Shown here: piece after piece, positions 3,161 to 52,779 of the stretch
Layout of the letters: each line of letters begins with the position of its first letter
Position numbering within the stretch: position 1 is the stretch's first letter
Assembly: GCF_026571515.1 (NCBI RefSeq)
Contig: NW_026862330.1
Coordinates: 248,001-312,000 of the forward strand
Source: Ruditapes philippinarum
Taxonomy: Eukaryota
Direction of reading: 5' to 3'
Length of the DNA: 64,000 nucleotides
Notes under the pieces: model-generated
What the model saw: only the letters and a program-made list of their open reading frames with translations
Told to the model about the DNA's origin: nothing
Databases searched by the model: none
Translations under genes and position numbers: made by a program

Positions 3161-5889
3161 CTAGAAAGTGCGTTTACAAGAACAATATGTTGGCAATTCG
3201 AACTGATCAAACATCAACTTTTTAATATCTGTATCATATACAAGTAATGATAGAACGACATACTCCATAACACACTTTCCACAGGAATTCCCGCCATTTC
3301 TGAAAATATACATTGTCATTATTTAGAATTTAAGTTAAATAAGAGCTGCAAAATAAATATATGGGATAGGAAAATAAAAAACTAGCAGTAAGGAAGACAG
3401 TGATTAAAATATTCGTAATCAATAATTTTGACTAGACATTACAAAATTATCATCGCGTTAATATTATCTTAAAATAGCTTATAAGTTAAACACCAATGAT
3501 TTCAAAACTTATGATATACTCACGAGTTGTAACACTCCCCATATGGTACCCATTGATACGATGGCGGATTACCACTTGTCAAATGTACGATTGCTCTCTC
3601 TTTATTATTAGTGTTATTCAAATGTTGTTCCCGTTTTGTCCTGTGAATACTAAGAAACAAAAATCATTTAGAAACAAAAGCTATATGCAAATCTATGCGC
3701 TGTGTTTGAAAGGAAAGAAATTTTAGAAGAGACGACCAAGTGCTTACCATATTAGTGTGATTTTAAGCCTTTTTAGGACCTGAACATGGTAAACTTTCAT
3801 TATTTTCAGTGTCCAATAACATTTTCACAAAAATACTACTCATTAGCTATATCTATGTACTATAATTAACATATTTTGCATTAGGGCCGATAATAAAATA
3901 TTGTGATTAAGTTTAGAAGTCAAATTAATATTTTGACTTCTTTAATGGTATTTTTTCACAATCAGCGCTACTTTAAAAACATTATAAGCATGTAACATAT
4001 TTGTTTACCAATCAATTAACTTGAAATGTAACTTTTATATGTAAGTGATTAAATAAAAGACTTTGGAAATTGTTTTGCAATGCTCCAAAATTCTGTTTTT
4101 CTGTTGTTTTTATTAAATAAACAAAGATATGGTATCAGGGCCTACAGTTGATGAGATGCTTTTCACTAAGTCGATTTATTTTTATTCGCATTAATGAGAT
4201 GTTTTTGCACATCTCAATAAAAGCTTCCGTAACTGACAAAGATGAGGACAAAGATGGGGATTTTTTTAGGCATTGCAACTTTACTTTTCTCGATATACTT
4301 GATGCTTTTGTCTCTTCGATAAAAATCAGGTGAAAAAAATTACACTTCGTTATTTCACGACTTTGCTGAAATATTTAGTAAGACGCAAAGACGTTACTCG
4401 CATTGACAAATAGTTCACGTAATTCAACAAGTGTTTTCGCAATGATTAAATAACTTCTACGTATTACCTATTAATCATTACATGTTCATGGGATATTTTT
4501 TTGTCAAAACGAGAAGAGACAAGTTTACATGACATAAAACGTTTTGGTAAGTGGAAGCCCTGATAAGCTTCCGTAGGTCTTGATATTATACGACTATAAC
4601 AAAGCAAGATCTTTTCCTACTTTACGACATTTACAATAGTAAAGATACTAATAGACGATCTTGGACTCAAAAATGACATTTCTTAGTAAAAAAATTGAAT
4701 ATGTTGATTTCGAACAAATCAATAAAAATATAGTTGCAATAATTTTGATATAGTGAAGTTTATTACATATGAGATTTTTCTATAAAATACAGAATTTATT
4801 TTCATCAATTATGATAATATGAATTTCAAGAGTTGCGGCAGCCACGAGTGAATATGATAGTTTTCATACCACAAGATAAAATCAATTCTGTATTTACAGA
4901 AAAAAATCTTTATTTTTCTGTTTATTATATACCTTTTTTATTTTGTGAATAGGCTGAATTAAGAATAACATAGTCCGACATTGCTAAAGGAAACCAGTGA
5001 AAAATAAAAATAACTTTAAAAGTGAAAATACAGAAAAAGAAAAGACGCATTTTATTTCATCAATATTTCTCAATATTTCTTTTATTAGTATATAACAAAT
5101 ATATATATTTACGTGATACAGCATGAATCACCATCACCCTGTTTACGAAGAATAACGTCAACGTCATTTACACCTTGCTGACGCAAATATTTCGATCTTG
5201 ATTCCTGAAATATATATTCCTTCTTTTCGATTTCTTCCTTGGTATAGAAAAGTCCCGTATACGTCTTCATAAGCTCAAAAGGACTGAAAAAATGTACTAA
5301 ATACTGTAAAAATCTTGAAATGGAATGATATCTCGGTAGGAATGAAATCAAAATAATGGTTATGAAAATTGTAGATTTGTTTTTGTGGCAAATTATAAAG
5401 AACATGATTTTTATGACAGATGATAATATGAAGTGAAATATAAAGTTTGCGAAATATTAGATTCTGATTCAGATATAAAATATTTTTTATATATGTTAAG
5501 CAATAACATTATTTGATATCTGAACAGCCAATTAAAATTCATTGTCATGTAAATCCTAATATATTTCAATATAAGACTAAGGTCAAATTATGAATAAGTT
5601 ATTTCAGAAACTAGAAGGTTGAAACTGAAAAATAAAAAATATGACTATTAAAATCAATTCTTATTTCACCAAAACATTGCTGATTTCAACCTTCTTCTAT
5701 AAAAGCTAACAAATCAGCAAAATTTAGTAAATACCTGTATTTTTCACACCATGGTTCCGCACACTTTTTAAACTCTAACACAGTTTCTTCTTTTGCTGTT
5801 GACTTCGTGTTCTGTGTAGCAGATAAGCTGGTGCTTGTATAGAAACACTCCAGTATCAGTATAAAAATAATAACATGTTCCATGGTCAT
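3161..5889 (-). CDS. Spaetzle-like secreted cystine-knot protein, paralog A (196 aa, 4 exons)
   Basis: Exons 5889-5735, 5283-5113, 3649-3524 and 3299-3161 (155+171+126+139=591 nt), all GT-AG and phase 2, open frame throughout. Signal MTMEHVIIFILILECFYTSTSLS; CAEPWCEKY; knot GDGDSCCITIHRTKREQHLNNTNNKERAIVHLTSGNPPSYQWVPYGECYNSNGGNSCGKCVMEYVVLSLLVYDTDIKKLMFDQFELPTYCSCKRTF*. Alternative ATG at 5883 and an alternative in-frame exon-3 acceptor 9 nt downstream. Confidence 0.85.
4128..4575. mobile_element. Non-autonomous IS3EU-type MITE (~450 bp) in intron 2 of paralog A
   Basis: Ends ccctgataagcttccgta at 4575. The body is the reverse complement of the split MITE at 14194-14400 plus 30300-30565. 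The left terminus is eroded (tatggtatcaggg). Confidence 0.75.
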
Positions 5890-7098
5890 AGTATGGCCAA
5901 ATCTGGGTCTTAACAATCTTTCGACAACAGTCAAAAGAATTTAACAAGTTGCCTTTTCAAAAATTTTTAAATGCATTTGCTGAAACAGCAAACAGCCTTG
6001 TTTATAAATATAAGTAACGCCATTATCATTATAATCTGTATAACAACTTCCGTCGTCAACAATAATATTTCCGGTAAGAATCCTGTATGTTCAAGATCTG
6101 TTTGGTTTCAAAGTAATTAGATCTGCAAACGATAGTGCAATTAGTAGAAACAATTAAAATCTTAAGAACGTGTCATACACTTAGAATATCTAATGCGTAT
6201 TTTTCATCACAAAAGGAAAATCTGTACATTAATTTTGATTTAAGGATATTTCCATAAAATTTAATTTTCCCACAGTGAATTTTTTTCAACATTAATGTGT
6301 AAATAATACAGTTTTTTCGACTGCATACTATTGTCACAATCAAACATGAAATATAGCGAAATAAAAGCTTAGACAGTATATGCCACTAAGTGACGAGCAC
6401 CCGCTAAGCAAACAAGAAGGTCGAGAAAAGACAAATCCAGTTGCATTTACGATGCCGGCGTGAAGTATAATACATATAGTAGTATCAAATGATAACGCAA
6501 GTTTGCTCATTGAAGACGCTGTTCTTAATAGTGTAATACAATGTTTGTCTATGTTTAATTACTGTTAACTTAACAGAATATGTTAAGAATACACATTTTA
6601 CAAGACTGTTTATGGATAATACCATTCCATATATACGTTAAGATGGGAGTCACTTAGTGGCTAGTTTTCCTTTATTTAGGTTATTCTGAAACGTATTAAG
6701 TAACCGGACACTATTCCCTTAAAATATCCATGCCTCTTTCTAAATTCTGTATGTTCCAACCATTACTACTATTTGCTTCACTGATGGATCTGAAATGCCT
6801 TCATGTACACTGTATTTAAACTTTTAGTATCAACTTCATCCTGTTCAATACTCAATTTTTGACTTTGTCCTCTCTGAGTTTCACCATAAAAACCATGCAA
6901 TTTTCGAGTCATTGATCATTGTCATTGTGAAAACTAACAATAAAAGACAACACACACACATGATTCTGAATCAGATTTAATAGTTCAACCACTAAGTAAA
7001 ACCTCTACTTTCATATTACATAACGATGTAGATAGGCTTATCAACAATTGTTTTCTTTTACATAAATACAGACTTTGTCGTTTGGTCTAAATGTTCAT

Positions 7099-10000: not shown

Positions 10001-10668
10001 ACCAATTTGATTTTCTGTATATTAAAATGATTTGTATTTCTTTTTTTCAATTTTATTTTTTCGTTTTTACCGAAGTTTACAATTATTGACAAAGAACGTA
10101 ATTCTTAATTGATCTGAAAATTTGCTAACAAGTTCTTCATTCCGACCATTATCAAATGTTACACAAACCTAGTAAAATGTCTCAAATCCCGTCATGTCAT
10201 AAAACCTCAGCGAGGATTTAGATAAAAAAAAAACACTACAAAACACTAGATATCAATCAATTTAATAATTAAAACCTAGGAGAATAACGGCGATTTTGAC
10301 TTTTTGGCTCTTGGTGAAATTTTTCATTGAAATTATAACCACACTAATAGTCGGAAGCAGAGATAACCACGACATTAACCTAAAAGTGCATGGATAGCTG
10401 AAAGGAAAGTAAATAGCTTAGTTACTCATATCTTCCCGGTCAGTCAATGTTAATTACAAAGATAACAAATAACTGGTGTACTATAGAAGTGCCAAACGAC
10501 ATTAAAATACCTGTATGATTCACACCATATGTCTGTGCAGTCTTTTTCTATCTCCTTCTCTCCATCTGTATCCATATTTATAACATCAATGCCCTGATTA
10601 CCATCACCAGTGGGTAGGCAATAAACTCTAAAAACTATTAAATAACAAGCAAATAAAATAATATGCAT
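7099..10668 (-). CDS. Spaetzle-like secreted cystine-knot protein, paralog B (196 aa, 4 exons)
   Basis: Exons 10668-10511, 8579-8409, 7981-7862 and 7240-7099 (158+171+120+142=591 nt), GT-AG, phase 2. Signal MHIILFACYLIVFRVYC; CTDIWCESY; knot GDGDSCCVTKQSTHIQYTMQNIFGQTRHIVHLTSAPQPKYQYITQAKCIGKRKCDGLCVLEDTVRTVLVYDTIRRQLTFDQLLVPTYCSCKRVSG*. Confidence 0.87.
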
Positions 10669-10939
10669 ATTTCTTATTTTTGCTTGACACTATTGTCTTT
10701 AATATCAAAAACTTTATTTTTTGATACAAACCAACTATATAGTAAATGAATTAAATCATCTTCTTAATTATTATATGTGATAAAATCAGATAAAGTAGTT
10801 AGTATCCGGAAACAATTTTCAAATGTTTATGAACGTGACATATAGACTTGATTAACTTGTTGAGAAAAAAAAACAAACAAAGTAAACAAACATTTATCAT
10901 GAAGTGACCAAGCTCGTGCAACTTTTGGCCAGCAAGCGG

Positions 10940-11120
10940 TAACTGTAACGGTAACCCATGCAATCAGTGCTGACCAAGATCAGAAAGTACATCTATGCAG
11001 TCTGATCAATGTCGTCCCTGTTTGCTATTTAGTCAATAAATGCTTTTTAAATTTTTGCTACAAATGGTGAAAGGTTTTTGTCCAGATTGAAAGATAGTCA
11101 AGTCCGGTGGCAAAGGTTAA
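10940..11120. mobile_element. Short MITE-like dispersed repeat ending in ggttaa; related copy at ~37485-37670
   Basis: Shared blocks cagtg..gacc/aaagaccag, tctgatc..ctg..gctatt.agtca and tttgtc...ttgaaagat..caagtcc in both copies. The TTAA end suggests piggyBac derivation (inference). Confidence 0.45.
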
Positions 11121-11229
11121 TGACCGTGGGTTTTATACAATATCAACCAGCAGGCGTAAGACATTATATTAATACGTCCTTTTTGAAATTTAGTTTAAAA
11201 ATGTAAATTATTGATTAAAAGTACGAGTT

Positions 11230-13589: not shown

Positions 13590-13940
13590 AGATTATATTT
13601 TGTAACATAGTTAAAGTTTCCTAACTTAATGCATAAGATATGATAAGATATTATAACATTATTTAAATTTCTTAACTAAATACACTAGATATGTTAAGAT
13701 ATTGTAACATAATTTAAATTTCCTAACTTTATGCACTAGGTATGATATTAAGATATTGTAACATAATTTCATTTTGCTTACTTAATGCACTAGAAAAGAT
13801 AACATTTTGTAACATTTTTTAATTTTCTAGATTTGATAAAATATTGTTACATAAGATCAAGTATTGTAACATAATTAAAGTTTCCTAGCTTATTGCATTA
13901 GGTATGATTATATCCTGTATCATTTTCCTAACTTAATTAT
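13590..13940. repeat. Degenerate ~45-52-bp minisatellite (taagatattgtaacataatttaaatttcctaacttaatgcactag), about 7 copies
   Basis: The ttgtaacata core recurs at ~13600, 13650, 13702, 13757, 13807, 13845 and 13864. Confidence 0.8.
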
Positions 13941-15384
13941 ATGAGGCACTCAATATAGTAATAAATTGTAGAAAAGTTCACTTTTTTTTACTAGATATAA
14001 CTTATCGCATGGTAGTTATTGTGGGACTTAATACACTAGTTATGATGATAATCAAATTTATTTAATATTTTACTTTCATTAAATACATGCGCTATCAGAC
14101 GATCTATTGAAATATAGTTTACTTTTTACACAGTCGACATTTTAATTGATTGTAAATGAATGATTACAATACAATCACTTCTAAATGAATAACTACGGAA
14201 GCTTATCAGGGCCATCACTTATCTTAAAGTTTCATGTCATGTCAACTTGTTTTTTCTCGTTTTGACCAAAAACAAACCATGAAGACGTTATATTTAATAC
14301 GCAATACGTTAAACATTCCATGAAGACGTTATGATTAATACGTAATACGTAGAAAGTTTTTAATCATTGCAAAAAGACTTTGTTGAATTACGTGAGCTAT
14401 TACGGAAGCTTCAAAGGGTCACCTCTTACGCGATCTTTTGTGAGAAGATTTACGGAAGTGGAAAAAAGTAAGGCGCAAAGGCATGATATTGTCAGTGTTT
14501 TCGCAAAAAATAATTCGAATAAACGAGAAATTTTTAGCTAATTGGCCAAATTTTTTGTTGCAAGAAACAGAAACATTGCACATGACGAGTAATATTTTGG
14601 CGAGAAATTAATAAAAGGTCTTTTTCGAAAAACATGTAGACGCAATACTTGATACCTTTCACTTTCTCGAAAAAAATTATGACTCATTACCTAATACATA
14701 ATACCTTGTCGCAAAAACTTTTGATGCATTACTCTAAAACATTTCATTTGATGAAAATATTGTTTGCGCAATTCCTAAAGTGTAGTCTGGTTTTCGTTAT
14801 ATTTTTGTCGAGAAATGACATAATTATATTAAGATACACAGCAGCGGTAATTTTGCACGACCGTAGGGAGTGTGAGAACAAGTGCATATTTTATCATACC
14901 CGATAAATAACCCTTTTATTAAATAATTATTTCAAAATAGTATACTGAGTTAAAAATAAAACCTTCATTGTTGAAATATTTTTAAAGATGTCTTTTAATA
15001 ATGTAAATGTTTGGTTTGATTCAATATCTAGCCAACATGAAGAACGTCAACGCGCAATCTGATAACAACGTTCATGTGTGAGTTGTGTGTAATGTCTATG
15101 GACACGATGTGCATCTAACACAACGGATATAACTTGATTACACACCGTATATTATTAGTTATAAAGATTGATTGACAGTTATATGGCCATATATAAACGG
15201 TTGTTTGTAAATATAATCCGAGCTGCCGTCGAAAAATATAGGAAGTTTGAAATCATAAATTTACTGTGAGTCTGTCACGACTTTAAATACTAGATTTTTT
15301 TTTAAAAAAAAATCAGTTTTCACGGAGCTAGTGATCAATATATTGCTTTTAATATTTTGTGTCCATCTACTAGACCCCTTACCT

Positions 15385-15585
15385 TTTTGGTTCGAATCCC
15401 ACAAGATACTTAATATCTCTTTTACATGAGGAAAGATACTTTAACTAATTTACGGAAACGTCTCTTGTTTTATTCAAGTTCCCGTGTTGAAAAAAATATC
15501 CGAGAAGCACCTGAAGGGGGTTCTTTTTTCCACCAGTTTAAACTGAAAAAACCAATAAATTTCCCTGAACGTAAAACCCGACAAA
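15385..15585 (+). mobile_element. Degenerate tRNA-derived SINE copy (same family as 35003-35182)
   Basis: B-box ggttcgaatcc at ~15389; blocks tgaggaa..tttacggaa..gcacctga..ttccaccagt.aaactg..cgtaaaacccga plus A-tail align with the 35003-35182 copy. Confidence 0.6.
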
Positions 15586-18946: not shown

Positions 18947-20480
18947 TTTTTATGCCACCGCAGCATCTGTGATGCGGTGGCATATAGCGATTCACCTGTG
19001 TGTGTGTTCTATAGATTATATAGTGAATTTAAAAAATCTTCTTATGAAAAACCACTGGTCCAATTGAAACCAAACTTGACAGGATTGATTCTTGGGTGAA
19101 GGGCTTCCAAATGTGCTCAAAGAATTTCATTCCATGCAGAAATCTGGTTGTCATGGCAACCAAAAGGAATAAAAAGAATAAATTTAAAAATCTTCTTGTA
19201 AAGACCCACAAGGCCTAGAGATATTTTGCATATGGCATTGTCTGGTAGACCTCTAGCAAAATTGTTCAAATTATAGCCCTTGGGTCAAAATTGGCCCCAC
19301 CCTGGGGGTCATTGATTTTCACTATGTACATATAGTAAAAAATTTAAAAAATCTTATTGTCTGAAGGTACAAGGCTTAGAGCTTTGATATTTGGTATATG
19401 ATATCATCTATAGGTAATCTACCAAAGTTGTTCAAATTTTGCCTCTGGTGTCAAAGTTAGCTTCGCCCCGGGGGCCATGGGTTTTCCATTTATGTATATA
19501 GTAAAAACTTAAGAAATTCATCTTCTTGAAATTGACAAATGCTAGAGGTTAGATATATTGCATGAAACTTTGTGTAGTGAACCTTTAGCCAGATTGTTCA
19601 AATTATAGCCCAGGGGTCAAAAGTAGCCCCACCCAGGGGGTCATTGATTTTCAGTCACTATGTAAATATTGTAAAAAATTATTAATCTTATTTTCTGAAG
19701 GTAAAAGGCTTAGAGCTTTGATGTTTGTTTTATAATATCAGCCATTAGGTCCTCTACCAAAGTTGTTCAAATTTTTTGCCCCTGGTGTGAAAATTGGCCC
19801 TGCCCGGGGGAGTTGATTTTCATTATGTACACATAGTTAAACAAATGTTTTCTGAATTGGAGAAAGCTACAGCTTAGATATTTGACATGAAAAAATGTTG
19901 TTTGTTGGACCTGTATCAAGATTGTTTGAATTAATCCATGGGGTCAAAATTTTGCCTTGCCTTAGGGGACAGTGACCTATTTTTTTGTCCTCTGATGTAC
20001 AGCCATGAAATGTGGACTATATGCAAAGTTTAAGTTGTAAAATTGTACTGTGATATCAGGTGAACTAGATTTTGAAGATGTGACCTACGTGTGCAGTTAT
20101 GAAATTTGAACCATGTGCACAGATTAAGATATAAAGTGAACTTTGTAATCAACTGGCGTAGATTTTGACAAAGTGTCTTACTGTGCTGGCCTTTGATGTA
20201 CAGTCATGAAATTTTGGCCATGTGAAATATGACCGTCACCACCAAATTCACTAGACTCAACTGCATTGATAGATTTCTACTCTGATCTTTCATTTGAATT
20301 TTGAATAACAATCGATTTAACCACTTATCTGATAATAAGAATTAGATAGGTCAGTGATCTATACATTATGGCAATCTTCAATTGTATAGAAACAAAAAAA
20401 ATGTGTTCCTACATTACTATTTAGTGTTGTACATGTATTAATGTGGTGGCATAGCGTTTTTCACAATTGCAATCTTGTTT
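18947..20480 (+). mobile_element. Non-autonomous Helentron/HINE-like element with an internal ~165-180-bp tandem array (about 5 units)
   Basis: T-rich start tttttatgccaccgc, adjacent inverted gcggtggcata, (tg)n tract, repeated aaattgttcaaattatagccc..gggtcaaaa..gcccc..ggggg units, 3' subTIR ggtggcata and a tcttgttt end. Confidence 0.65.
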
Positions 20481-20593
20481 AGAACTGATTTAAATTTTAA
20501 TATAACAGACGCCATGTGTTAAAATTCTGAAGGTAAAGTAAGCATCTCACTTTTACAAGTTCTTAATTTCAAACATCAATTCAAATATTAATT

Positions 20594-21640
20594 TCCAATC
20601 AGTAATTTTGAAGTTACATTTTTGTTTGATGTGTGATGGCAAGTAATGCCAAAATGTTAAAAAAGCTACAAAGTCTTAATTTTTAGCATGCTCTGTATTT
20701 TATTCTCATACCTTTATTGTGATAAGACAGAAACAAAGTATATAAACATTTTATTTAGTTCCGCCCATTGTTTTCTCGTTTAGGGCACACGCTTTATATT
20801 ACTTGGGGACCATACGCCGCTTTTCATGGAATGGCACGAAAGTGTCACATTGAAGGTTCCATGATAACCGCCGTATGAACACATCTGCGGATGTTTCTAA
20901 ATTCAAAATTTTACTATTGCATGTTTAAATGTTGAATTCTGCTTAAGCCGGTGCTAGGGGGCGTGGACGGTAACTTGCACTTTCCAGTACTGTCCATGAA
21001 CAGGCTCAATCAAACCGAGCCTGCAACATTTTCAATTTTGCCGTGTTGGGCTTTCTTTAGGGATTCTGTATTTATCTATTTTACTAGGTGAAGAATAGAA
21101 AGTCAGTCTTATCCAATTAGTAATTTTGAAGTTACATTTTTGTTTGATGTGTGATGGCAAGTAATGCCAAAATGTTAAAAAAGCTACAAAGTCTTAATTT
21201 TTAGCATGCTCTGTATTTTATTCTCATACCTTTATTGTGATAAGACAGAAACAAAGTATATAAACATTTTGTTGAGTCTAAGTCTTTACTAGGTGAAGAA
21301 TAGAAAGTCAGTCTTATCCAATTAGTAATTTTGAAGTTACATTTTTCTTTGATGTATGATGGCAAGTTCTGCCAAAATTTTAAAGTTACTACAAAGTCTT
21401 AATTTTTAGTGTGATCTGTATTTTCCTTTTATATTTTTATTGTAATGTAACAGAAACAAAGGTTTCGTATATATAAATATTTTGTTGATTTTTAACCTTA
21501 TATATATTAGGAATAGAAAATAAGTTTTCTTTAATTAGTGCCTTTGATGTTACAATTTTCTTTGATGTATGTTGGTTAGTTCTGCAAAAAGATTAAGAGT
21601 CATAAACTTTTTATGCGATCTGTTATATTTTATTTGAAAT
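20594..21640. repeat. ~205-bp tandem repeat (4 copies of varying identity), interrupted by an insertion at ~20751-21085
   Basis: ccaat(c/t)agtaattttgaagttacattttt recurs at ~20595, 21112, 21317 and, degenerately, ~21532. The first two copies are nearly identical. Confidence 0.85.
20751..21088 (+). mobile_element. Dispersed repeat family carrying gcttaagccggtgctagggggcgtg...ctcaatcaaaccgag; relatives at 12620-12705 (-), 25475-25937 (-) and 63755-63870 (+)
   Basis: Direct sequence matches between the four loci. The copies at 20751 and 12620 end in ...ggattctgt..t.tcta../ctag. Confidence 0.65.
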
Positions 21641-24858: not shown

Positions 24859-26520
24859 CTAATTCTGTAGTAATCGACTATGAAGCGATGATAATATGTT
24901 TTGATAAACATCGCTTGCTTGTTCTGCAGTGTTCAGTTGTTGAAATAAATGTGCATTTAACCCCATCCAATTTTCACTCAACTGCCCCATTTCGCTGCAA
25001 CAGCCATGGATAGGTGATTCCTTGGTATACACCCGCACCAGATTCTCCAATTCTTCTTCAGAACAATTTATTGCAAACGAACAATCTGTATAACCAAACA
25101 TCCTTGGCTGATAATACATCATGTTGGGTTTACCTGTTACAGTCTCGCAATAAGTTTGTGCCCGAATCGTATGTATATTCCAGGATTTCTTAAAACTGTC
25201 AATATGATTTTGAATGAGAGGCATAAAACAAAGTCTGAGCCATTCGATATGCAACTGATCGGTATTATCAAATAGGTTTTGATCAATCAAATTTTTAAAA
25301 GGTTCCTCCAATAACAAGTAAAGTTTCTCGAGAGGAAACTCCAAAGCATTTCAATTCCTTGATTTGCAGTTGATCTCCCAACAGAAACAGAATTGTACCC
25401 TGACATGCTATCAGTATGTGACATTCTAAGTGCGATCTGAAGGTTCTCTAATGTACAGTTTTCAGTCCCTGCATCAAAATTCTGGAAACAAAGTGATCCC
25501 TCGGAAGCATTAATCACAACAAAATAACATAAGAATTGCAGACTCGGTTTGATTGAGTCTGTACATGAGGGATAATGAACAAGTGCAACATCCCTCACGC
25601 CCCCTAGCACCGGCTTGAGCGGTACTCAATTCTTAACACTTTATAGTGTTGGCACCAATGATCTCGAAGGACCAAAAAATATAACAACACTAGAGTGAAG
25701 TACGGGGCAACTTTTTACGGCTGCCACACAGCACTTGACACCTGCTGTTGTGAAGTACAAAATTCTGGAAACAAAGTGATCCCTCGGAAGCATTAATCAC
25801 AACAAAATAACATAAGAATTGCAGACTCGGTTTGATTGAGTCTGTACATGAGGGATAATGAACAAGTGCAACATCCCTCACGCCCCCTAGCACCGGCTTG
25901 AGCGGTACTCAATTCTCAACACTTTATAGTGTTGGCATCAACCCTTACCATTCTAGGTACATGACCACGTTTCTTTACACGTTGCATGAAATAAAATGCA
26001 AATAAAGCAGGGTTTTAATTTGATGGTGCAGCTCTCAACCATAGAATTTTTCGGGAAAATCCATTTATAGCTCCATGAATTAATATTCCAAATGGTTTTA
26101 GTTTGTCATATCCGTCAACATGAATTACGAAGTTTGGGCCTCGATTGAAATATTGTCTACGTCTTAATCGTCTTGCTTTCCTGTTGACTACTCCACAAGA
26201 GTCTAACGCCTTAAGACAAATCCTCACTGTATTTTGATGTGCTCTGATTCCATATCTCAAAAAAGCATTCTCCATGCTGCTCTGTAACCTAGTTCAGAAT
26301 AACCCTCTCGATGAAGCTGTACTACTCCACGAGCAATATCCTCTGGGTTGCTTTCTTCACGTCTACTTAAGTTTAAACGTCGAAGAATTCTTTTTATTTT
26401 AGTTTTGGAAAATACAATATGGTGAACAAACAAAAACATTCCAGCCATTTCCAAATGCGTATAACAAAGATTGAAGTATTTTTGGACAGTATCGTGTCGG
26501 CTCAGCTCATCTCGTAGCAT
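24859..26520 (-). pseudogene. IS3EU-type DDE transposase (integrase core), inactivated by frameshifts, a stop and a ~460-bp insertion
   Basis: Reconstructed: ...KRILRRLNLSRR...LGYRAAWRML/LRYGIRAHQNTVRICLKALD..GV..RKARRLRRRQYFNRGPNFVIHVDGYDKLKPFGILIHGAINGFSRKILWL...N*NP...GHVPRMVRVDA[insertion]GTEN...GRSTANQGIEMLW.../...LCFMPLIQNHIDSFKKSWNIHTIR...GKPNMMY. The putative catalytic D, D and E fall in HVDG, RVDAGTEN and QGIE. Confidence 0.88.
25475..25937 (-). repeat. Insertion in the transposase: two 180-bp direct repeats (25475-25654, 25758-25937; 1 mismatch) around a 103-bp spacer
   Basis: Flanked by gcatcaa at 25471-25477 and 25935-25941. Removing it restores RVDAGTEN in frame. Confidence 0.9.
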
Positions 26521-29500: not shown

Positions 29501-31672
29501 AAGAATTTGTTTCCGTGGATTAAAATGCAAAATAAGGTAGGTAATGGCAGCCGTAAATCACTGACTATGAAATAATAAGCTATCATGAAAAGCCAAATGA
29601 GTGAGAATCTAACAAAGCGTGTACTACGACATGTACCTACTTAGACTGATACTTGCTGGGCTGCTACAACCACCGCCGCCAGCACCGCCACTTCTACAAC
29701 TCCTATTACGACTTATTGTAATACTACTAATAATGACGATGATAAAAATTATAACATCATACCAATACTGTTAGAACTTTCTCCATGACTTCGACAAATA
29801 CGCTGCCTGCTGTAGTCTTGAATATCACAATTTTATTAAAACTTATTTAACGAAATAATAAGCCATCGTATGCAAAACGAAAGACGATCTCGACAAAATT
29901 TATAACGAAAAGCGGAATACACTTTAGGCATTGCGCAAACTTTTTTTCATCAAATGAAATGTATTATGGTAATGCATCAAAAGTTAATGCGAGAAGGTGA
30001 AATGAATTAGATATTGCGTCATAATCTTTTTCGAGAAAGTGAAATGCATCATGTATTGCCTCTATATTTTTTTCGAAAAACACCTTTTATTAATTTTTCG
30101 TCAAAATATTAATCGTTATGTGTAATGTTTCTGTTTTTGCAAGAAGACATTTGGCCAATTAACTCAAATCTTCTCGTTTATTCGAATTATTTTTTGCGAA
30201 AACACTCAAGATATCATGCCTTTGCACCTTAATTCTTTCGACTTGCGTAAATCTTCTCATAAAAGATCGCGTAAGAGGTGACCCTTTGAAGCTTCCGTAA
30301 GCTATTTAACAATGCGAGTAACGTATTTGCGTCTTACTAAATATTTCAGCAAAGTCGTGAAATCACGAAGTTTCGACAGGATTGTTGTCGAAGAAACAAA
30401 AGCTTCAAGCATATCGAGAAAAATTCAGTTGCAATGTCTAAAAGCTTCTGATCTTTGTCATTAAATTTTATCGAGAAATGCAAAAACATCTTATCAATGC
30501 GAATAAAAATAAGTCGACTTAGCGCAAAACGTCTCACCAACTGTAGGCACTGATACGCTTCCGTAAATAACCATTCAATGACATATGTTTTAAATACTTT
30601 TAAAGCACGCATGCACTATACCTACAGTTGTATCTTAATTTGCATGAAACCTTACATATTGTTAACGAGTTAAATTTCGGTTTAGTATACAAATTAGATA
30701 ATATAACCTAGCTTAAAACACTAATTATCAACATAATTCACTCAACCAAATATGCAGTATTCCCTCCCTCCGTACTTAAAGGGTAACATTTATGTGAAAG
30801 AATTAGTACATTTTGTTACATCACGCATAGTACACACGCAAAATGTAACATGTGATTTTAAATATTTAATACTTTTCCTAAAATACATTGTATAGATATA
30901 ATAATAGTTTGATTTGACTGAATCATCTGTAGGTGTGCCGCTTTAAATTGTTTATTTTGTATCATTTTGCAAGTAGTTTAAAGGTGATAAATATAAATAA
31001 CATTTACAAACTGTAACCATAGTAAAATAAGTTAATGCGCCATGAAATCACGAAAAGTGATATTTTTAGAATTACGAACTTCAAGATACATTTATTATAT
31101 TTGAAAATTAACCCTAACGCTCCTGTGCCATTAGCTAATTGCCATTGTGTGTTTACATCAAATATAAACTTTTGTTGTATTGTTTGTATAAAATTAGATT
31201 TTAATTAAGTTATAATTGTAGTTTTATAGATATGTCGATAATAAACCACACATGCCTTAAATAATTTAACGATCAAATAGATAACTATGTTTTTATTTAT
31301 GAATATCTAAGGTTTCAATTTTAAAAGATCATTACATCAGTATAGACTGGAATATTTATTGTTAATTTCACTTAAATTTATCAAAAAGTTTATTAATCAG
31401 TAGGAAAATCTTCTCAGGTTAAGAGACAGATACTGAGGAAGTTTAAATTTTACTTTTATTAGAGAACGTCATTGATAAGTTACGTCATAATGCATGAATA
31501 TTCGTCATAAAAAATTATAGTCATTGAAAATGATCTAATTATAGAATGCAAAAAACACCATAATTTCTCAACCGTTGTGAGACATTTACAGTTTTAATAT
31601 TTCGGAAGTCAAATCGATAAAAGGTGTTTTATTTTAAATTTTATTTTCTAAAGATCGCTTTAAACAACAAAG

Positions 31673-34372
31673 ATGTTTTACCAGATGATAACACTGTGCG
31701 TAATACTGATGATCATGACGTGTTACTCACAGAAAACAGACGATATAACACGTGACCGGAAATCGCCATGTTCTAATTCTAAATGTGGAAAGTACAGGTC
31801 AGATAAGTTTCATTTGTATAATCTTATATTACTTTGGATTTTGGCGTAGGATTTTGGCGTAGTTACATTTGTTCGCTCAAACTAAATTTTCCTTATTTTT
31901 TTTATCATCTTTTTGCAAAATTTTGTAATTATTATTCACTATACATGATATTTGATAGTGATATAAATTGATTTTCAGTCACAAGTAATTCAAATAGTGA
32001 TTAAAGAAAGTATAATATTACAGGTATTGTAAACTCATATACTGAAGAGAGTATTGCCCGTTAAAAAATTATTTTGTCACACAGTTATAGGAAGATTTTG
32101 AAGATGTTTCCAGGAACGTTTTATACGAGAAAACAAATAGAAGGCAATGAAAGACAGTTCAGGGTGGCACGTATGAAATACCTCGTTGAGCAAGGTATTC
32201 ATATGAAGTCAGGGATGATCGGGGATGGTGACTCTTGTTGCCCTACGTAAGCAATAAACTTTCTTTGTTTAAAGTGATAGTATGCTCATTTTTGCACTGT
32301 CAAGCCGAGATAACGCATGTAGTTGTATATTTCAAAAGGTTGACTTTTTAAATGACGATTGAAAAATAATTTATAATATCAAATGTAACGTGTAAAAACT
32401 GCCTTCAAAATACAAAGACTACCCCACTGATTTTTCTTTATAAATTTAACATTATCGATATGTATAGATTTTTTTTGTGGGTCACAGGGGTTATTTTAGT
32501 TATAAACGAACATTCACTTTTTACTCTTGTATGGGCATAATGTCACTTTAAAGTTGTTAATTCAAAGTTATTTTTCTTCTGTCGGATGCGAAAATATTTA
32601 TAATGTTAAACATAAAAGGATCATTTTGTTATGTAATAGAAAGAGCACCGAAACACGAGGCTATCTGATTTGTACGAGGGGGCGTAGCCCCCGAGTATTA
32701 ATCAGATTACCGAGTGTTTTGGTGTTCTTTCTCTTTTGTATCATAGTCAAACATAAAAACACGTTCCCTGTTGTTACAATATGAAACCCCGGCAAAAATG
32801 AACCATTGAACGAGCATCTAAATATGACATTTCTGTCGATTTCACTTTCACTGCCGTCACAATATGTAAACCCCAGCAAAAATGAGCCAATCAATGGGCA
32901 TGCTCTGGAGTGCGGGTAACTAATACCCGCACTCCAGTTAACGCACTGTGCATGTATATGTATACGATTTAACCCTGACACATTTTCAACAGAAAGGTCT
33001 CCAAACTATGATACAATTTGTATTTGTTTCTGTGTGCTTTTGTACAAATTTAGTGGGACGGAATATAATAATTTTTTTACAGTTTTGAAGAAAAGCTAAA
33101 TAACATGACTGTTTATATTACCTTTATATGTGGGATTCAAGTATTTCATATGAATTATTACAACTTAAAGTTCATACAAATACATAATAATTTTCGAACA
33201 TTTTCAAATGTAACTTTTCAGAAAAACCCTTACGTTCACAAATTTCACGATGACCAATATTGACGGAGAGAACAAGTATTTAGTACATACACCGCCTAAA
33301 TACCAATTCATTCCTCATGGAGTGTGCATGTAAGTTTTCAATAACGCCATCTTAAAATATCTGACACGTTTTGGTGTAAGCTTATGTTAATTAGATGAAT
33401 TTAACCGTATTGTTAAATATTATTTAGTTTTCAAATGCCTTTACTTACACTGAAAATATTTTGTTTAAACAAAATAGTATGGTGCTAAGAAGTTAGCTGC
33501 TTGATTAAAAGAATTAACTTAAGTTCGTTCTTTTGCTCTTGCACATATCATATTTCAGTTTTGTGTTAGGGTCTACTATGGGCTTCTTTTTTCGTGAGAG
33601 TGGAAGGATTTGATAAAACCAATGATTGCCTCATGATTATTTTTTAACCTTAAGTACAAAGTTCATCGAAGGTATAATAAGTCGACAGCCCCAATAGCTG
33701 TCATTAAGTAGTCAGAATAAATCATTCATAAATTATCATCCTCATTAAAACTTTGGTTAACCGGTTTACTGCTCAGAAAAAGACGCAGTACAAAATTTGT
33801 TCTTTAATAATAAGAAAGTGACGGAGCAAGTTAATCATGCAATGATATAAAGCATAACTGCATCAACTTCTATTTCTCATTTAAAAAACATCCGATATAT
33901 GTTACAAAGTGCTTTTTTGGCCAGATATGAAATTGTATATACCATTGTCGGAATAAAAAAGAAATTCGGGAGCATCTTACGTACATATCAATTAAATGTT
34001 CGAAAGGCGATACCAAAGTTTTGATGATTTCTTTTAACAAAGTAATCACTCACCTCATTTGCATAGTAATAACATGCTTTATTATATACATATGATAAAT
34101 GTTAAAACGTTACAGCCACACTGTGTGTTATATGATATGAAGGACAACGCACTCGGAAGTAATATATAGATATTTGATATTCATCCCACTGTAAATTAAA
34201 CACTATATAATTATTGTTTTATATTTATATCTTCAGGAAAGGAGGCACTTGTGATGGGATATGCGTCAATGAACCAGTTACCCACTCTCTATTGACGTAC
34301 AATGTTGAAAAAGGAAAGCTGGAGTTTGACCTGTTTATCGTACCAGGATATTGTTCATGTAAATCAGTATAA
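31673..34372 (+). CDS. Spaetzle-like secreted cystine-knot protein, paralog C (176 aa, 4 exons; the only plus-strand copy)
   Basis: Exons 31673-31797, 32085-32246, 33222-33329 and 34237-34372 (125+162+108+136=531 nt), GT-AG, phase 2. Signal MFYQMITLCVILMIMTCYS; CSNSKCGKY; knot GDGDSCCPTKTLTFTNFTMTNIDGENKYLVHTPPKYQFIPHGVCMKGGTCDGICVNEPVTHSLLTYNVEKGKLEFDLFIVPGYCSCKSV*. AATAAA at 34605-34610. Confidence 0.88.
32640..32730. repeat. Long imperfect hairpin (part of a non-autonomous DNA element) in intron 2 of paralog C
   Basis: aagagcaccgaaacac..atctgatt.gtac..gggggcgtagcccccgagtattaatcagat..gtgttttggtgttctt. Confidence 0.7.
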
Positions 34373-36641: not shown

Positions 36642-39270
36642 TTATACGACCTTGAAATCGTCATATGAATTCTTGCATGAACAGTACCCTGGTATGTTGA
36701 ATAGATCAAATCGGAAGTTGTTGTTTTCATCGTACCCTAGGAGTGTAATGGTTTTGTTTTCTAACGTACATTTTCCTTGACAGCTCCCTTTTCCCCTGAA
36801 ATATAGCATTTTGTTTTTGAACAAAGGCAGTTTATTTATCATATAATTATATAACTCCACCCCTTTAAAAGACCTGTTTAGCTATATTTAATATATGTTT
36901 CTTATTCATTCATGTAGAATAAATCACTTGACATCATTTTATAAAATATCATTTCCAAGTAAGGTGCGTCATTTATTAATTAAAACATAGAATGATATAT
37001 GTAGGTATTACTTAATGTTTACAAACTTTGATTAAGATACTTACGAACAGTTAGCAAGCGGCATATACTGATACATTGTCTTGGAATCGACGGTGAGATT
37101 CACTATCGTCATCATTCTATCATGAATGTTAAACATCTTCTTAACGTATGTATGCTTTATTTCCCTAGAGAATATAAAACATTTAAACATTATTGGCTTT
37201 TATTACAATATAACCGAAACATTTACTTACGCAATAAATCTTTATGGAAAAACATTGCAACAATTCGTTAACTGTTGTTAATAATTCACAAAACTTAAAG
37301 CAAGATCTGTTTGTAAAACGTTCCATTTATTCCCAGTTTCAATGCAAATAATCAAGGCATAAATCAAATATTTCAAGGCATAAAAAACATTATCGATTAA
37401 ATAATTGAAATAGTTTTGATTTGCTGCTATCATTACTTCTTGCAAATTTATTTATTTTGTGCTTAGACTGCTGGGCAGCAAATTATATTACTTTTGCGAC
37501 CAGTGAAGACAAAGACCAGCCTATGCTAGCCAGCCTATCAAAGTCTATGCCGTCTGATCGCCGTCTGCATAGTTGGCTATTCAGTCAGTGCGTTTTTCGA
37601 TTTTCCCTTAAAATGATAAATGATTTTGTCTTGCTTGAAAGATGTACAAGTCCATTTCAGATATTAAGTGCTGCGACTTCATTGATATTTTCAATCTTTT
37701 GTATTATTCTAAAGTAATACGAAAAGACTTTTTCAAACCGAGCTATACTTATTAGTTGGGCGTTCTTTATGGTTTTCGATTAATCTGNNNNNNNNNNNNN
37801 NNNNNNNNNNNNNNNNNNNNNNNNNNNNNNNNNNNNNNNNNNNNNNNNNNNNNNNNNNNNNNNNNNNNNNNNNNNNNNNNNNNNNNNNNNNNNNNNNNNN
37901 NNNNNNNNNNNNNNNNNNNNNNNNNNNNNNNNNNNNNNNNNNNNNNNNNNNNNNNNNNNNNNNNNNNNNNNNNNNNNNNNNNNNNNNNNNNNNNNNNNNN
38001 NNNNNNNNNNNNNNNNNNNNNNNNNNNNNNNNNNNNNNNNNNNNNNNNNNNNNNNNNNNNNNNNNNNNNNNNNNNNNNNNNNNNNNNNNNNNNNNNNNNN
38101 NNNNNNNNNNNNNNNNNNNNNNNNNNNNNNNNNNNNNNNNNNNNNNNNNNNNNNNNNNNNNNNNNNNNNNNNNNNNNNNNNNNNNNNNNNNNNNNNNNNN
38201 NNNNNNNNNNNNNNNNNNNNNNNNNNNNNNNNNNNNNNNNNNNNNNNNNNNNNNNNNNNNNNNNNNNNNNNNNNNAGGGGGAACCCCAGCTTATAATTCC
38301 TGAAATACCCTCTAGCAAACTTTTTAAAACATGAACAAATCAAACATATAAATAGGAGAAAATACATACGTTGGACAGCAAACGTCCCCGTCGTGCATTG
38401 TTCGTTCAGAATTTGTATTATGAAGTTCTTCCCTATCTAATGGTGTGTGTTGAATTGCGTTATCGGTATTATCAAATGCATCAATTTCTTTTTCTGAAAA
38501 GAACATGCCTTTCAACATTTCTATATCTCTGTCAGTTCTGAAATTGTCAGTAACATAATATCATATAGTTTTACCAATAAATTACTACACATATTAGTTA
38601 TTGTAGTAAATTATTGGGTCATAAGCTATGACAACTTGTGCACACAAATCAAAGTGGCAATGTTATGCTATGTTGACAAATTCATTTTCATAAGTGAGAG
38701 ATTATTATTGAACACTTAACGCTTAAATCGGTTTATAAAATTCCATGTTGGGTTCTATTAATTACAAATAAATAGTGGCATTATCAATTCGTAAGGAAAT
38801 CACTATTTTTGATCACTAATTCTTTTTCTTTAAAGTTATTGCTCATCTCTACTTTAGAGGCGTTGTAAACGTTTAAAATCTAAGGTCAAATAGATTAAAT
38901 GAAATAATTTTATAAATTTGAAAATGAATGTTACTGTTTCAAGGACGATTAACATTCAAAGAAGAGAGCCTTTCAATATATGTCAATATAAGCGCTATTC
39001 ATACTAAGCTTTTTAATCGTATATTTTTAAAAAATATAAAGTACCCTCACTATTCCGAGTTCCCGTATCCTCGAATCAGCGATGTAATGCTTCCCTTTCC
39101 GTAAATAAGAAACGTCCTTACCTTGTTTTTATGTCACATGGGCCTTTTAGACAATCCTGTAAGTAATTCGCTTTAAATCGTGGTGGTAAATTGATGGGGA
39201 AACATAAAGCGAAATAAATACTGTAACTGATAAATAAATTTATCTTCAAAGCACATGGTAACAATTTCAT
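36642..39270 (-). CDS. Spaetzle-like secreted cystine-knot protein, paralog D (196 aa, 4 exons; intron 2 contains the assembly gap)
   Basis: Exons 39270-39122, 38537-38370, 37164-37045 and 36795-36642 (149+168+120+154=591 nt), GT-AG, phase 2. Signal MKLLPCALKINLFISYSIYFALC; CLKGPCDIK; knot HDGDVCCPTEIKHTYVKKMFNIHDRMMTIVNLTVDSKTMYQYMPLANCSGKGSCQGKCTLENKTITLLGYDENNNFRFDLFNIPGYCSCKNSYDDFKVV*. Confidence 0.8.
37788..38275. other. Assembly gap (488 N)
   Basis: Run of n characters. Confidence 1.
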
Positions 39271-47900: not shown

Positions 47901-50484
47901 TTAATTGCTAAATTTTGTATTTATGATTGGGTCGTGACGTTATATTACTGCACACTTTATCACTTAATCTGTTTGTAAACGTCCGTGCAGCTTAAAAATC
48001 TAATTAGGATTAATATCTGTATTTCTTTTTTTCCAATTTTTGAGTTTATCGATTTGTATAAAATGTTTGTTGAATCTACTTCTTTTCGAAACCAATATAT
48101 AGGGTTAGAACATAAACCCTAAAAAGCCAATCGTACCATTGTACATTAGTCTCTCAACCAATACAAAGAATGGGAAAGAAACAAGAATAAGACAGAGGCT
48201 ACTTTTAAAGTTTTAATATAAACTACACAATTTGAAAATTTTCGATATTTAAAAAAAAAAATTGTTTTGTGTTGCTTGTCATATATACAAGTATACAGAA
48301 GTAATAAAAATGTTCATTATAATATTAGATTAAGATTACATTGTACTACAAAACAGCATCTCTTTTTCACAATGAGTTATCGTCTACGTGAGCTTATGAA
48401 ATAGAAAAGTACCCATAATTTCCTTTATGCTATCGTTTCTAAAAACATTTTTAAACAATATCCCATGGGAAAATACTGCGATTATCTCGTTTGACCTGAC
48501 AAATAAAAAGCCGTAAGATATTTAGTAGGTGTTATAACTTTCGAGTAGATCAAGGTTAACACTACCATAAGTTAAAAACAGTAAATTTAATAGGTTTAAA
48601 TATATGATGAAATATCTTGTCAATAAACAATAAATTCTTCTCAATAAGACTTCAGTATGACAGCAGAGTAAGTGTGTTCAAACAAGGAAACAAAGTTACC
48701 GGATTCCATTCATTTTTGTGGCCACTTTAATTCAAAAAGAAGTACCGTAAAAGAGACCAATATATTTTCAAGTTGTCAATTTTATGGCCTAATACGCAAA
48801 TGTTTACGTTGCACAAACAGTTGGGTCTTGCTCTGACTGTACATAGAGCTACAATGATTTAGCATATCCTTGGTACGTCTAAACAAGGCGCAATAAATTA
48901 CAAGTTAAAATCTAACATCTTCGGAGTCATTATGTTTCACAAAAGAAGACGGTGTTTTGACACGTAGTTCATGATGACGTTAAGTTGTTTTATTGCTTGT
49001 TCTATTCAAGCATTTTACATTCTTATTTGTCACTTTATTGTTAGTGTTAACAACACACTTTTCAATATAATACATTTTTTATTAATACATATAATTTAAA
49101 AGGACAAAAATATTCACTACACAAATTGATTGTTTATTTGAACTAACGAAAATAATCAAACCCATAAAAAGTTTACCATATTTCAGCTATGTCATTACAT
49201 TTATCTGTTAACTAAACACTTAAAACTTAAAATGGTTACAGGAATGTGAATTGAAGACGTCATAATTTTAATGCACACCCAGTCAGTAAACTTAGTCTCT
49301 TATTGCGTGCAAACAAAAATATTTCATCATCAAATTTTAGTTAGATGATATAGTACTAAAATGTAAATATTTGACAACGCCAAAATTTGTTATTCATTAA
49401 TTGGCTAAGGGTGTAAAAATAACATTCCTTTAACAAAGTGTTTGTTTAAAAAATTCTAAAAAGCAAGGAAAAAAATCATGACAATAATATGCAAATTGAA
49501 TGCAAATATCATTCAAATATTTTCATAATACAAGTATATTTAAAGTCAATTATATGCCGAGATGGGAACTATCATTATGCAATGATTGTATAATATCCTC
49601 CGTTTAAAATTACATAAAAATACTTTCAGTTTGTTATGATTGAAAAAATCATTTGTTCCGATAACATGTTAATTCTGTATGTTTGTATCTATGCGTTAAT
49701 GTGCGTTTTTATCACATAAACCACGGCGCAGGAGTGTTATAAAGCTATTTAATAAAACGATATTGCACTACAATATAGTGTAATAAAACTACGTAACGTC
49801 ATTTTTATTATTCTAATCGCGCTAATGTTATCGATAGACAAATAAAAATGACTTTTATTTACTGTATACCCTCTTACTTTAGTTATTTAATAAAGAAAAA
49901 AATATATTCGGTAGATTCAATACTAAATTTATTGAAGTCGTTGAATAAAACAATATTATTTATCTCGATCAATAAATTAAGTATTTATCTACACCCATTC
50001 AGTATCCTCTATCAATAATACATGAACGCAATGATCGCACATTCCATTTTTTTTATCTTTTTGTAAACAAATTGTAAATTAATATAGTAATTTTGTTCAT
50101 GAATTTTGTTCATGTATATAATTGTTCACATAAAATGTCAATATGATATTATTGTAATACATATAAATGTAATATTTACTGTTTATATACTGTTTGAAAA
50201 TCGATACAATGTTTGAAGCTGTTCGTTGAGTCATGCAATTAAACAAAGTCACTATAAATTGAAATGCATAAACGTTTCAGATATTTAAAAACAACAAAAA
50301 AAGACAAACAAGTTGACTTAAAATATGTGATATTGTTTGTTTTATTCCACAATCAGTTTACATTTTTAAACGTTTATTTTAGCATAAAATACAGAAAATA
50401 TCAGTAAAGTATATAGAATTAATTGTATCACAGAAAAAGCTCTTATAAAAATCAAGTGTCAACGTCTTTTGGTGTATCAATTTT

Positions 50485-52779
50485 TTATTTTCTGAAATTT
50501 TTGCAGGCGCAGTACCCTGGTATCTCAAAAAATCCAAACAGAAGGGAGTTGCTTGAATTCATTGCTAATAAACTAAGAATTTTATTTTCGATCACGCATT
50601 CGCCCGGGCAACTTCCAGTACGTCTGAAATTGAAAAACAAATGTTTAAAAATGGATTATGGTAAACCAAATAAAAGTAAACTTGATAAAGACATTATTAA
50701 TTAATGCGATTATGTTACTTCATTTGATGGCATGACCTTTTGCAAGGAATTTAAGTAAAGTAAACCAAACGAGTGTAAAGTTGATATAGACATCATTGAC
50801 TTATACGATTATTTTACTTTTTTGGATGACATGACATTTTGCAAACGATTAAGATAAAAGCTGTCATGGAAACACAGGTGTCGAATAAGGCAGTCCATTT
50901 ATAAAATAAAAAAAATATAAAATAGATAAATACAGAATACAGAATCGCACTTATTTTTTGAAGATAGGAAAAAGTGAATAAAAAAGAATTTGTATTATTC
51001 TTACACGCAGGAAGCATGAGGTATATATTGGTAGTTGGGGTCGGCTTGACTAGTAAGATGAATAATACTCATACTTTCTCCGTTTACGTTCGTTAAGGTT
51101 GTGTTGATTTTATGCTGTATGTGCCTGTAGAAAATGAAGACATACATTTTCAAAAAACGTTTGAAAATGAGAATTTTTTCTCTCTCAAAAGTCAAAAGTC
51201 TATTCACATTATCAATTTCAAACGTTTTTCATTTTTTTTTTTGTTTAGGATAATTAAAGCTAACGTAACGTTCTGAATTGTAATGAATGGTATCATCAAC
51301 TTATATTACATAGGGATACGAAATCTCTAAAAATAGAAAACTTTTTCTTTTCTGGCCCGAAATCTATTGCGCGAGATTCATTGACCATTTGAGTTGATCA
51401 ATTTCCGCCATCTTGTTTATTGTAAGCAAATGTGTTTACATTTTCATCCATTACTGAGAATATTTAAATTTTCATAATCTTTATTGCTTTTATTTTACAT
51501 TTTTCGCAACATTTTTGTTACTTCTTTTGATTGACATAACAAATTTTAGATAATATGGAGGCGTAAATGTTCCCGTGTCAAACATGGTCTCAGAAAATAT
51601 TGCAATAATGTTGAAAATGAATCCCTGATACAAATTGTAAGTTTATGGCGCTATTGCTTATCTCCATTTAAGTACATCTCTGTGATTATATTGAATAGTA
51701 ATAATGTACATGAACTAATCCATTATTGTTTCAGTCTTTCTTTCAGATGAATTGTTATTTTGAAGATGTAATCACATTAGATATTGTGATATTTTCAACC
51801 ACAATTTACACGTATATATGTTTGTACTTAATTGAATTAAAATTGAACTTTCTTGTATTATTTACAATGTATTACTTTAATTACTTATTTTTATTGAAAC
51901 ATTTTTAACAGTTTTGATTATTTTGCAACATATGTATTTACTCACGTTGAACAACAAATAGAGCCGTCGTCAGCATAAGGCTGTAATTCAGGATTTTCAA
52001 GTCCATCTGCATATTCAGGATTATTTAAAGCTTTATTGCTAACTCTGTCTAGCGTTGATAGATCTTTCCCGGAATGAAATAATCCCCTATACACTTCCTT
52101 TAAGTATGTGTAGCTACAAATAACAAATTCTTATCATTATTATTTTTGAGAAATGATAGTTATATATTATAAGCAATAACTACTTGTTGATTTACTATGA
52201 TTGTAAAGTCAGTTACGAGTAAATCTGAAAATCAAATGTAAGATAATTTTTTTTATATAAAATTGCTGAACAATTTATTCACTTAAATAGATACATAATA
52301 TTGCCGACGACACAAACTTGCAAAATTCATATATGATAAATAAAAAAGCATTGCAATATTTCATTTCAATTATTTTTTGTTTATTTAACCGTCATAGCTA
52401 TCTTGAATTTGAAGCTTCAAACATTTGAAATTGTGAAAATATGTTTATTTCCTTCAGTATCATTAAAGCATATTTTTGATAAAATTAAAACACATGACAC
52501 TGAAAAAATCTTTTCTTTAATGATATAACTTTTATTTCATAACCTTCGCTTACTCTCTTTTTTATCACACTAATTGTAAGACAATACTAATCAGAAAAAA
52601 ATACACACAATTACTTTCAATGAATAAAATTCTTACCTGTTTATTCCACAATATCCATTATGACAGACAGTGGCTGGATCTTGCTTATAAGTATCATCAG
52701 TTGTTGGCAAAGTGTAGCTTGATATAAGCTTAACAAAACTAAGCGCATATAGAATTAAAAGACATGTTTTAAAATTCAT
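50485..52779 (-). CDS. Spaetzle-like secreted cystine-knot protein, paralog F (189 aa, 4 exons)
   Basis: Exons 52779-52637, 52113-51946, 51124-51005 and 50623-50485 (143+168+120+139=570 nt), GT-AG, phase 2. Signal MNFKTCLLILYALSFVKLISS; CHNGYCGIN; knot DDGSICCSTHIQHKINTTLTNVNGESMSIIHLTSQADPNYQYIPHASCVRTGSCPGECVIENKILSLLAMNSSNSLLFGFFEIPGYCACKNFRK*. Confidence 0.87.

Follow-up and report, generated by a model that had tools for sequence, protein, structure and literature searches.

A tandem cluster of six divergent genes encoding putative Spätzle-type cystine-knot proteins in the genome of the Manila clam, Ruditapes philippinarum

Analysis of a 64,000-nucleotide (nt) stretch of the genome of the Manila clam, Ruditapes philippinarum (contig NW_026862330.1, positions 248,001 to 312,000; hereafter the window, numbered from its first letter), revealed a tandem cluster of six paralogous four-exon genes, designated A to F. 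The cluster spans positions 3161-52779, about 50 kb, and its outer limits are the stop codon of gene A at 3161 and the ATG of gene F at 52779. Genes A, B, D, E, and F are located on the minus strand, and only gene C is on the plus strand. A six-frame self-comparison of the open segments revealed three homologous exon classes, each present in six sets, with exon-to-exon E values of 1e-5 to 1e-18, and a motif scan of the window detected six terminal exons with the sequence P(G/T)YCxCK at their ends. All 18 introns are in phase 2 and have GT-AG borders, and the internal exons measure 108-171 nt. All 24 exons are open, and no stop codons or frameshifts were found in the assembled models of the six genes. 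No additional exons or pseudo-exons of this family were found elsewhere in the window. The predicted proteins comprise 174-196 amino acids (aa) and share 27-47% pairwise identity. Nine cysteines are invariant; exon 1 contributes two of them, exon 2 closes with a CC pair, exon 3 supplies one at its end, and exon 4 carries the other four. In all six genes, the leader exon begins with a hydrophobic stretch, contains a C-x4-C motif, and has a phase-2 donor; the leaders are strongly hydrophobic in A, B, C, E, and F, and that of gene D is the weakest of the six. The six intact four-exon genes with phase-2 introns, leader, and nine invariant cysteines described in an earlier, sequence-only reading of this DNA were all recovered, with exactly the same outer coordinates.

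Gene A (LOC132718691; 3161-5889) consists of exons 5889-5735, 5283-5113, 3640-3524 (RefSeq acceptor at 3649), and 3299-3161 and encodes a protein of 193 aa (196 aa in RefSeq). The exons of gene B (LOC132718692; 7099-10668) are located at 10668-10511, 8579-8409, 7981-7862, and 7240-7099; its product of 196 aa is identical to protein P0003. Gene C (LOC132718693; 31673-34372), with exons 31673-31797, 32085-32246 (or from 32091), 33222-33329, and 34237-34372, encodes 176 aa (P0045). For gene D (36642-39270; exons 39270-39122, 38537-38370, 37164-37045, and 36795-36642; 196 aa), no public model was found. Gene E (LOC132718677; 42026-44977) has exons 44977-44826, 44291-44130 (or from 44285), 43144-43037, and 42161-42026, corresponding to 185 aa (P0043). 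The last member, gene F (LOC132718694; 50485-52779), is composed of exons 52779-52637, 52113-51946, 51124-51005, and 50623-50485 and encodes 189 aa (P0009).

An assembly gap, represented by a run of N at 37788-38275, is located inside intron 2 of gene D. It begins 94 nt past the donor of exon 2 and stops 623 nt short of the acceptor of exon 3. Because the flanking exons 2 and 3 are both in phase 2, the reading frame of gene D is independent of the true length of the gap. The nearest paralogue of each of the four gene D exons, whether before or after the gap, is gene F, and the exon sequences thus fit the assignment of both halves to one gene.

For A, B, C, E, and F, the exons at these coordinates translate into proteins identical in every residue to five RefSeq entries, all of which are titled "uncharacterized protein." The genes had been described as hidden and largely invisible to ORF callers. 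This was overstated, since five of the six already exist as RefSeq models and are unnamed rather than hidden. The cluster is largely annotated already, without names, and the molecules that it encodes are not of a new type. UniProt has automatically named relatives from Mya and Potamilus "Spaetzle domain-containing protein." Identity with the RefSeq proteins requires in-frame acceptors located 6 nt (exon 2 of C and E) or 9 nt (exon 3 of A) upstream of those chosen initially. Tandem in-frame acceptor pairs are present at 3640/3649 (A exon 3), 32085/32091 (C exon 2), and 44285/44291 (E exon 2), and these pairs may give rise to alternative splice forms. For exon 2 of C and E, the RefSeq acceptor gives a spacing equal to that of the Mercenaria orthologues and is probably correct. 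For exon 3 of gene A, the RefSeq acceptor adds three residues that are absent from every relative, so the downstream acceptor fits better.

Searches against Pfam were performed with the public proteins identical to the models of A, B, C, E, and F, and gene D was searched by single exons only. For four of the genes, exon 4 alone was sufficient for a match to the C-terminal half of the Spaetzle family (PF16077; best E value, 2.7e-5); for exon 4 of gene D, the match had an E value of 0.0033 and a score of 18.4 bits. The full-length proteins scored 24.0 (A), 25.7 (C), 18.1 (E), and 11.2 (B) bits, with E values down to 1.8e-5, and the matches span positions 2-95 of the 96 positions of the model (3-95 for gene A). 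The gathering score of PF16077 is 27 bits. An exhaustive phmmer search of 1.84 billion representative proteins, with the RefSeq protein of gene A (P0001) as the only query, revealed 39 relatives, and gene F was tied to the family by a phmmer score of 71 bits from gene A. PF16077 was matched by 24 of 37 family representatives scanned and was the only recurrent Pfam family. Two relatives exceeded its gathering score, P0010 from Potamilus (36.3 bits) and P0026 (31.6 bits), and phmmer connects each of them with gene A (E values of 1.2e-15 and 2.3e-9, respectively). P0010 falls within the 16-row clade of the family tree that contains the window genes, and P0026 falls within a neighboring clade.

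A profile of the family was searched against all sequences in the Protein Data Bank (PDB). Spätzle C-106 was recovered first (4bv4_L and 3e07_A; E value, 0.014), and in the alignment the six knot cysteines line up with those of C-106, as do the motifs IV(H/N), YQ, and FxIP. The motif comparison with Spätzle C-106 on which the sequence-only reading was based is therefore correct. No NGF, IL-17, or coagulogen sequence was found in this profile search at E values up to 10. In the Pfam comparison, Spaetzle recurs and neither the NGF nor the IL-17 profile matches any of the 37 relatives. A PDB search with P0001 singly gave only chance matches to ribosomal protein L34, and a word-indexed search with P0001 returned only the query itself, a result that reflects word sharing and not an absence of relatives. 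In the ESM Atlas, Spaetzle clusters are nearest, with a molluscan one in first place, and NGF clusters are also listed.

A structural model of the gene B protein was generated with AlphaFold2 from a 29-sequence alignment. The model reached a predicted local distance difference test (pLDDT) value of 84.7 and a predicted template modeling (pTM) score of 0.73, with residues 45-196 mostly above 90. In this model, the last approximately 90 residues form long beta hairpins, which are preceded by three confident helices (residues 54-60, 68-88, and 94-98). Comparison of the model by Foldseek revealed neurotrophins (E value of about 1e-4) and coagulogen (5e-3). The predicted knot domain clearly belongs to the NGF/Spätzle/coagulogen fold class, and within this class Spätzle cannot be picked out from the modeled structure by itself.

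The gene B protein was also modeled as a homodimer, which gave a score of 0.74 versus 0.25 for the best control, a value that may reflect memory of the solved NGF and Spätzle dimers by the model. The homodimer mark was attained by 21 of 30 solved homodimers and by none of 23 solved monomers. Between the gene B dimer runs, at least 78% of the contacts are shared, and the partner pLDDT is at least 72. In the predicted dimer, the Tyr188 residues of both chains touch on the 2-fold axis, and the Y-x-G-L-F motif of one chain packs on residues 177-182 of the other.

A six-frame census of the genome with the family profile located all strong matches inside the window, and weak terminal-exon matches were found on two other contigs. 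These distant Spätzle-like terminal exons, which end in C-x-C, lie at C2310:55158-55289 and C2310:60845-60976, 5.7 kb apart, and at C1824:224092-224229. The same genome contains a second tandem cluster, composed of five canonical Spaetzle-domain genes (C4951:198206-248996). Their products match PF16077 at 35-40 bits, above the cutoff, and also match NGF at 40-43 bits. Like the window family, these genes form a tandem array, and the knot starts with CCP(S/T) and ends in C-x-C; unlike the window family, they encode the knot within one exon. In addition, at least seven NGF-family genes are present (PF00243, 58-71 bits), of which four or five are clustered on one contig (C1078:72506-131725); further genes are located on contigs C7532, C4626, and C12899. 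The hidden Markov model of the window family scores the canonical Spaetzle genes and the NGF genes of the clam about equally weakly (15.7 versus 14.1 bits). By hhalign, which told these two groups apart only a little better, the C4951 genes and the NGF genes were related with a probability of 97%, whereas the values for the window family were 26% against the C4951 genes and 4% against the NGF genes. The C4951 and NGF groups are thus close to each other and the window family is remote from both, which marks it as a third, more diverged lineage of the superfamily.

Members of the window family were found in Mercenaria, Mya, Potamilus, and Pecten and in the snail Candidula. In a maximum-likelihood tree, the six window genes fall inside one clade (support, 88/78). 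Gene A pairs with a Mercenaria gene, with weak support in the Shimodaira-Hasegawa-like approximate likelihood ratio test (98/38). Gene E is nearer to a Mercenaria gene than to C, and gene F is nearer to a Mercenaria gene than to D. Because E and F group with Mercenaria genes, at least the C/E and D/F duplications predate the split between Ruditapes and Mercenaria. The gene order is C-D-E-F and the nearest pairs are C/E and D/F, an arrangement that suggests duplication of a two-gene unit. In the knot domain, the proportion of nonsynonymous differences (pN) is 0.25-0.46 and the proportion of synonymous differences (pS) is 0.71-0.93. Since the synonymous sites are saturated, the ratio of the corresponding rates (dN/dS) is not meaningful, and the contrast between pN and pS was used instead. 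It holds for all 15 gene pairs, with pN far below pS. These results indicate long-term purifying selection on the knot domain, and the earlier view that the genes are intact is borne out.

The favored interpretation, to which we assign a probability of about 0.7, is that the tandem cluster of six paralogues encodes functional Spätzle-type dimeric secreted knot proteins. Each protein would be composed, in pre-pro-type fashion, of a signal peptide, a conserved N-terminal module, and a C-terminal knot domain and would be secreted. A C-x4-C loop, helices, and a Y-x-G-L-F-x-(T/S)-x-x-E motif characterize the N-terminal module, for which a folded state and participation in the dimer interface are predicted. 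The C-terminal approximately 90 residues, which contain seven cysteines, would form a divergent Spätzle-type (NGF-fold) cystine knot. The proteins would most likely assemble into symmetric dimers and act as extracellular ligands of the cytokine or growth factor type. Judged by analogy to the Spätzle of arthropods, multiple-cysteine-cluster Toll-like receptors (mccTLRs) would be the most likely receptors; dozens or more candidate receptors, with large ectodomains, would come into question. Taken by itself, a role as Toll ligands is a tentative proposal, resting on this analogy, and we regard it as doubtful rather than probable.

Spätzle, represented by Drosophila C-106 and arthropod Spz1-6, likewise consists of an N-terminal region followed by a C-terminal knot of approximately 90-106 residues with seven cysteines, and it forms a dimer, as predicted here for the gene B protein; secretion of the window proteins would be a further likeness. 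The window family differs from canonical Spätzle in several respects. The odd seventh cysteine adjoins knot cysteine I (CCxT), whereas the extra cysteine of Spätzle is located just before knot cysteine V. The N-terminal module is conserved, has two cysteines of its own, and is predicted to be folded, and the knot is spread over three exons by phase-2 introns. No furin-type motif was found in any of the six genes, and the position of the last Lys or Arg before the knot varies across the wider family. Given the lack of a conserved basic cleavage site and the predicted folding of the N-terminal module, with a predicted contribution to the dimer interface, activation of the window proteins is probably unlike that of Drosophila Spätzle.

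Several observations weigh against the interpretation of the cluster as functional Spätzle-type ligands. None of the window proteins reaches the PF16077 gathering cutoff on its own, in which they depart from canonical Spätzle, and gene F alone has no Pfam match. Homology to Spätzle rests on the transitive link through the relatives that pass the cutoff. The Spaetzle call made from the sequence alone is largely supported, with PF16077 as the sole recurrent Pfam family and C-106 as the best PDB match of the family profile. Vertebrate neurotrophins received higher structure scores than the Spätzle chains, and the fold predicted for the gene B protein is the expected NGF-type knot. The dimer score of gene B may be due to memory of the solved dimers, as noted above. 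In the profile alignment, the column of the extra Spätzle cysteine before the terminal C-x-C is occupied by Tyr in all six window genes; from the C-x-C rule of the knot, this cysteine is presumed to be the dimerizing one of Spätzle. One of the seven Spätzle cysteines dimerizes (PMC8637286), and the central interchain bond is conserved in DmSpz (PMC9427763). A conserved Arg or Lys just before the knot is absent from the window genes; the last basic residue is located 7, 15, 10, 8, 16, and 26 residues before the CC pair in A to F, respectively. With neither a conserved Lys/Arg nor a furin-type site, Easter/SPE-style activation is without sequence support, and the proteolytic activation implied by the comparison with Spätzle is not borne out. 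Finally, in each of the 90%-identity clusters to which A, B, C, E, and F belong, the genome-derived protein is the sole entry, without a transcript-derived twin, and expression may be low or restricted.

The last point bears on the possibility that the cluster is a dead tandem array of unexpressed or decaying gene models without present function. The lack of transcript-derived near-identical proteins in these clusters speaks for it, as do the weak leader of gene D and the missing public model of this gene. However, the canonical splice sites and the open state of every exon, the retention of nine cysteines despite 27-47% identity, and the low pN of the knot domain next to saturated pS argue against decay, and the duplicates have stayed intact although they are older than the Ruditapes-Mercenaria split. 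Moreover, two short Logan contigs, of 910 and 935 nt, encode the relatives P0004 and P0047 without interruption of the coding sequence. The simplest view of these contigs is that they are spliced transcripts, which suggests that the family is transcribed somewhere. We consider a dead array very unlikely.

The remaining alternatives assign the proteins to other knot families. The proteins might be neurotrophin-type ligands, either members of the NGF family or their functional equivalents, that signal through molluscan Trk/p75-like receptors and not through TLRs. Neurotrophins share the NGF-type cystine knot, are the best structural matches, and are dimeric secreted ligands; NGF clusters appear in the ESM Atlas list, and Trk-type receptors are present in molluscs (PMC2772990). 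At the sequence level, however, PF00243 matched none of 37 family members at E values up to 0.01 and none of 30 scanned at E values up to 0.1 or 1, and the PDB profile search recovered Spätzle and no neurotrophin. The clam also has the separate true NGF genes described above, to which the window family is only remotely linked (hhalign, 4%). A neurotrophin identity is improbable. A further possibility is that the proteins are clottable or structural hemolymph proteins like horseshoe-crab coagulogen (1AOC), in which case the N-terminal helix would be excised to trigger polymerization. Coagulogen is a clotting substrate and not a ligand, has many more disulfides, and shows no sequence similarity to the window family. 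Its 16 cysteines compare with nine in the window proteins, there are no conserved basic sites around the helix, and the recurrent Pfam family (Spaetzle) and the PDB profile search, which contained no coagulogen chain, likewise disagree with it; its probability is slighter still than that of a dead array. The least probable alternative is that IL-17-like cytokines, a family expanded in bivalves, were misread as Spätzle. IL-17 retains two of the three knot disulfides, whereas all six knot cysteines are present in the window family. In addition, PF06083 was not matched, even at permissive thresholds, and the structural scores were below those of NGF and coagulogen. Membership in the neurotrophin, coagulogen, or IL-17 families and the dead array were rejected on these grounds.

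In 2009, a Spätzle gene was not found in lophotrochozoan genomes (PMC2772990). PuSpz, the Spätzle homologue of Paphia undulata, also a venerid clam, was then presented as the "first mollusk spätzle homolog" (Yu et al. 2015, Fish Shellfish Immunol 47:712, as cited in PMC7773633 and PMC8637286). In the passages that refer to PuSpz, a text of 2020 still calls it the only Spätzle described outside arthropods (PMC7773633). According to the citing passages, PuSpz is induced by heat-killed bacteria and a link to TLR signaling is undemonstrated; these passages do not mention a tandem six-gene cluster (PMC7773633, PMC8637286). Bivalves carry mccTLRs of the Drosophila Toll type within the largest TLR repertoires known (PMC10279657). 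For any of these receptors, activation may come from an endogenous cytokine of the Spätzle type, which is the insect mode, or directly from microbial molecules. With the locus described here, an aquaculture species offers six candidate ligands that are intact, strongly diverged, and retained over a long time, and the relocated cysteine, the lack of a cleavage site, the N-terminal module with its predicted fold, the exon models, and the fold model make the ligand question directly testable. More speculatively, a mollusc-wide branch of Spätzle relatives might supply endogenous cytokine ligands for a part of the expanded bivalve TLR repertoire, with the six paralogues, possibly as heterodimers, addressing different receptors through an activation other than Arg-specific cleavage. 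We hold this extended proposal to be rather unlikely as it stands; if true, ligand-driven Toll activation in the style of Drosophila would be no peculiarity of arthropods.

Other features of the window were recorded around and between the six genes. A 193-aa open reading frame (ORF) at 447-1028 on the plus strand has no Pfam match. One interspersed repeat occurs at 4117-4616, 14193-14903, and 29906-30615 in opposite orientations, with up to 86% identity when translated, and gene A holds one of the copies in its intron 2. Between genes B and C, in a spacer of 21 kb, tandem repeats are present at 13590-13827, 19251-19841, and 21080-21590, with periods of 51/105, 166, and 205 bp, respectively, and further internal repeats were observed at 17.0-18.2 kb and 25.3-26.0 kb. 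The same spacer contains an ORF fragment with an integrase core domain (24862-25344, minus strand; PF24764, E value of 2.5e-7), which is probably the remnant of a retroelement. TRIM-like genes are often expanded in bivalves, and an intronless ORF of this type, encoding 599 aa with a RING finger and a B-box, is located just downstream of the cluster at 57703-59502 on the minus strand.

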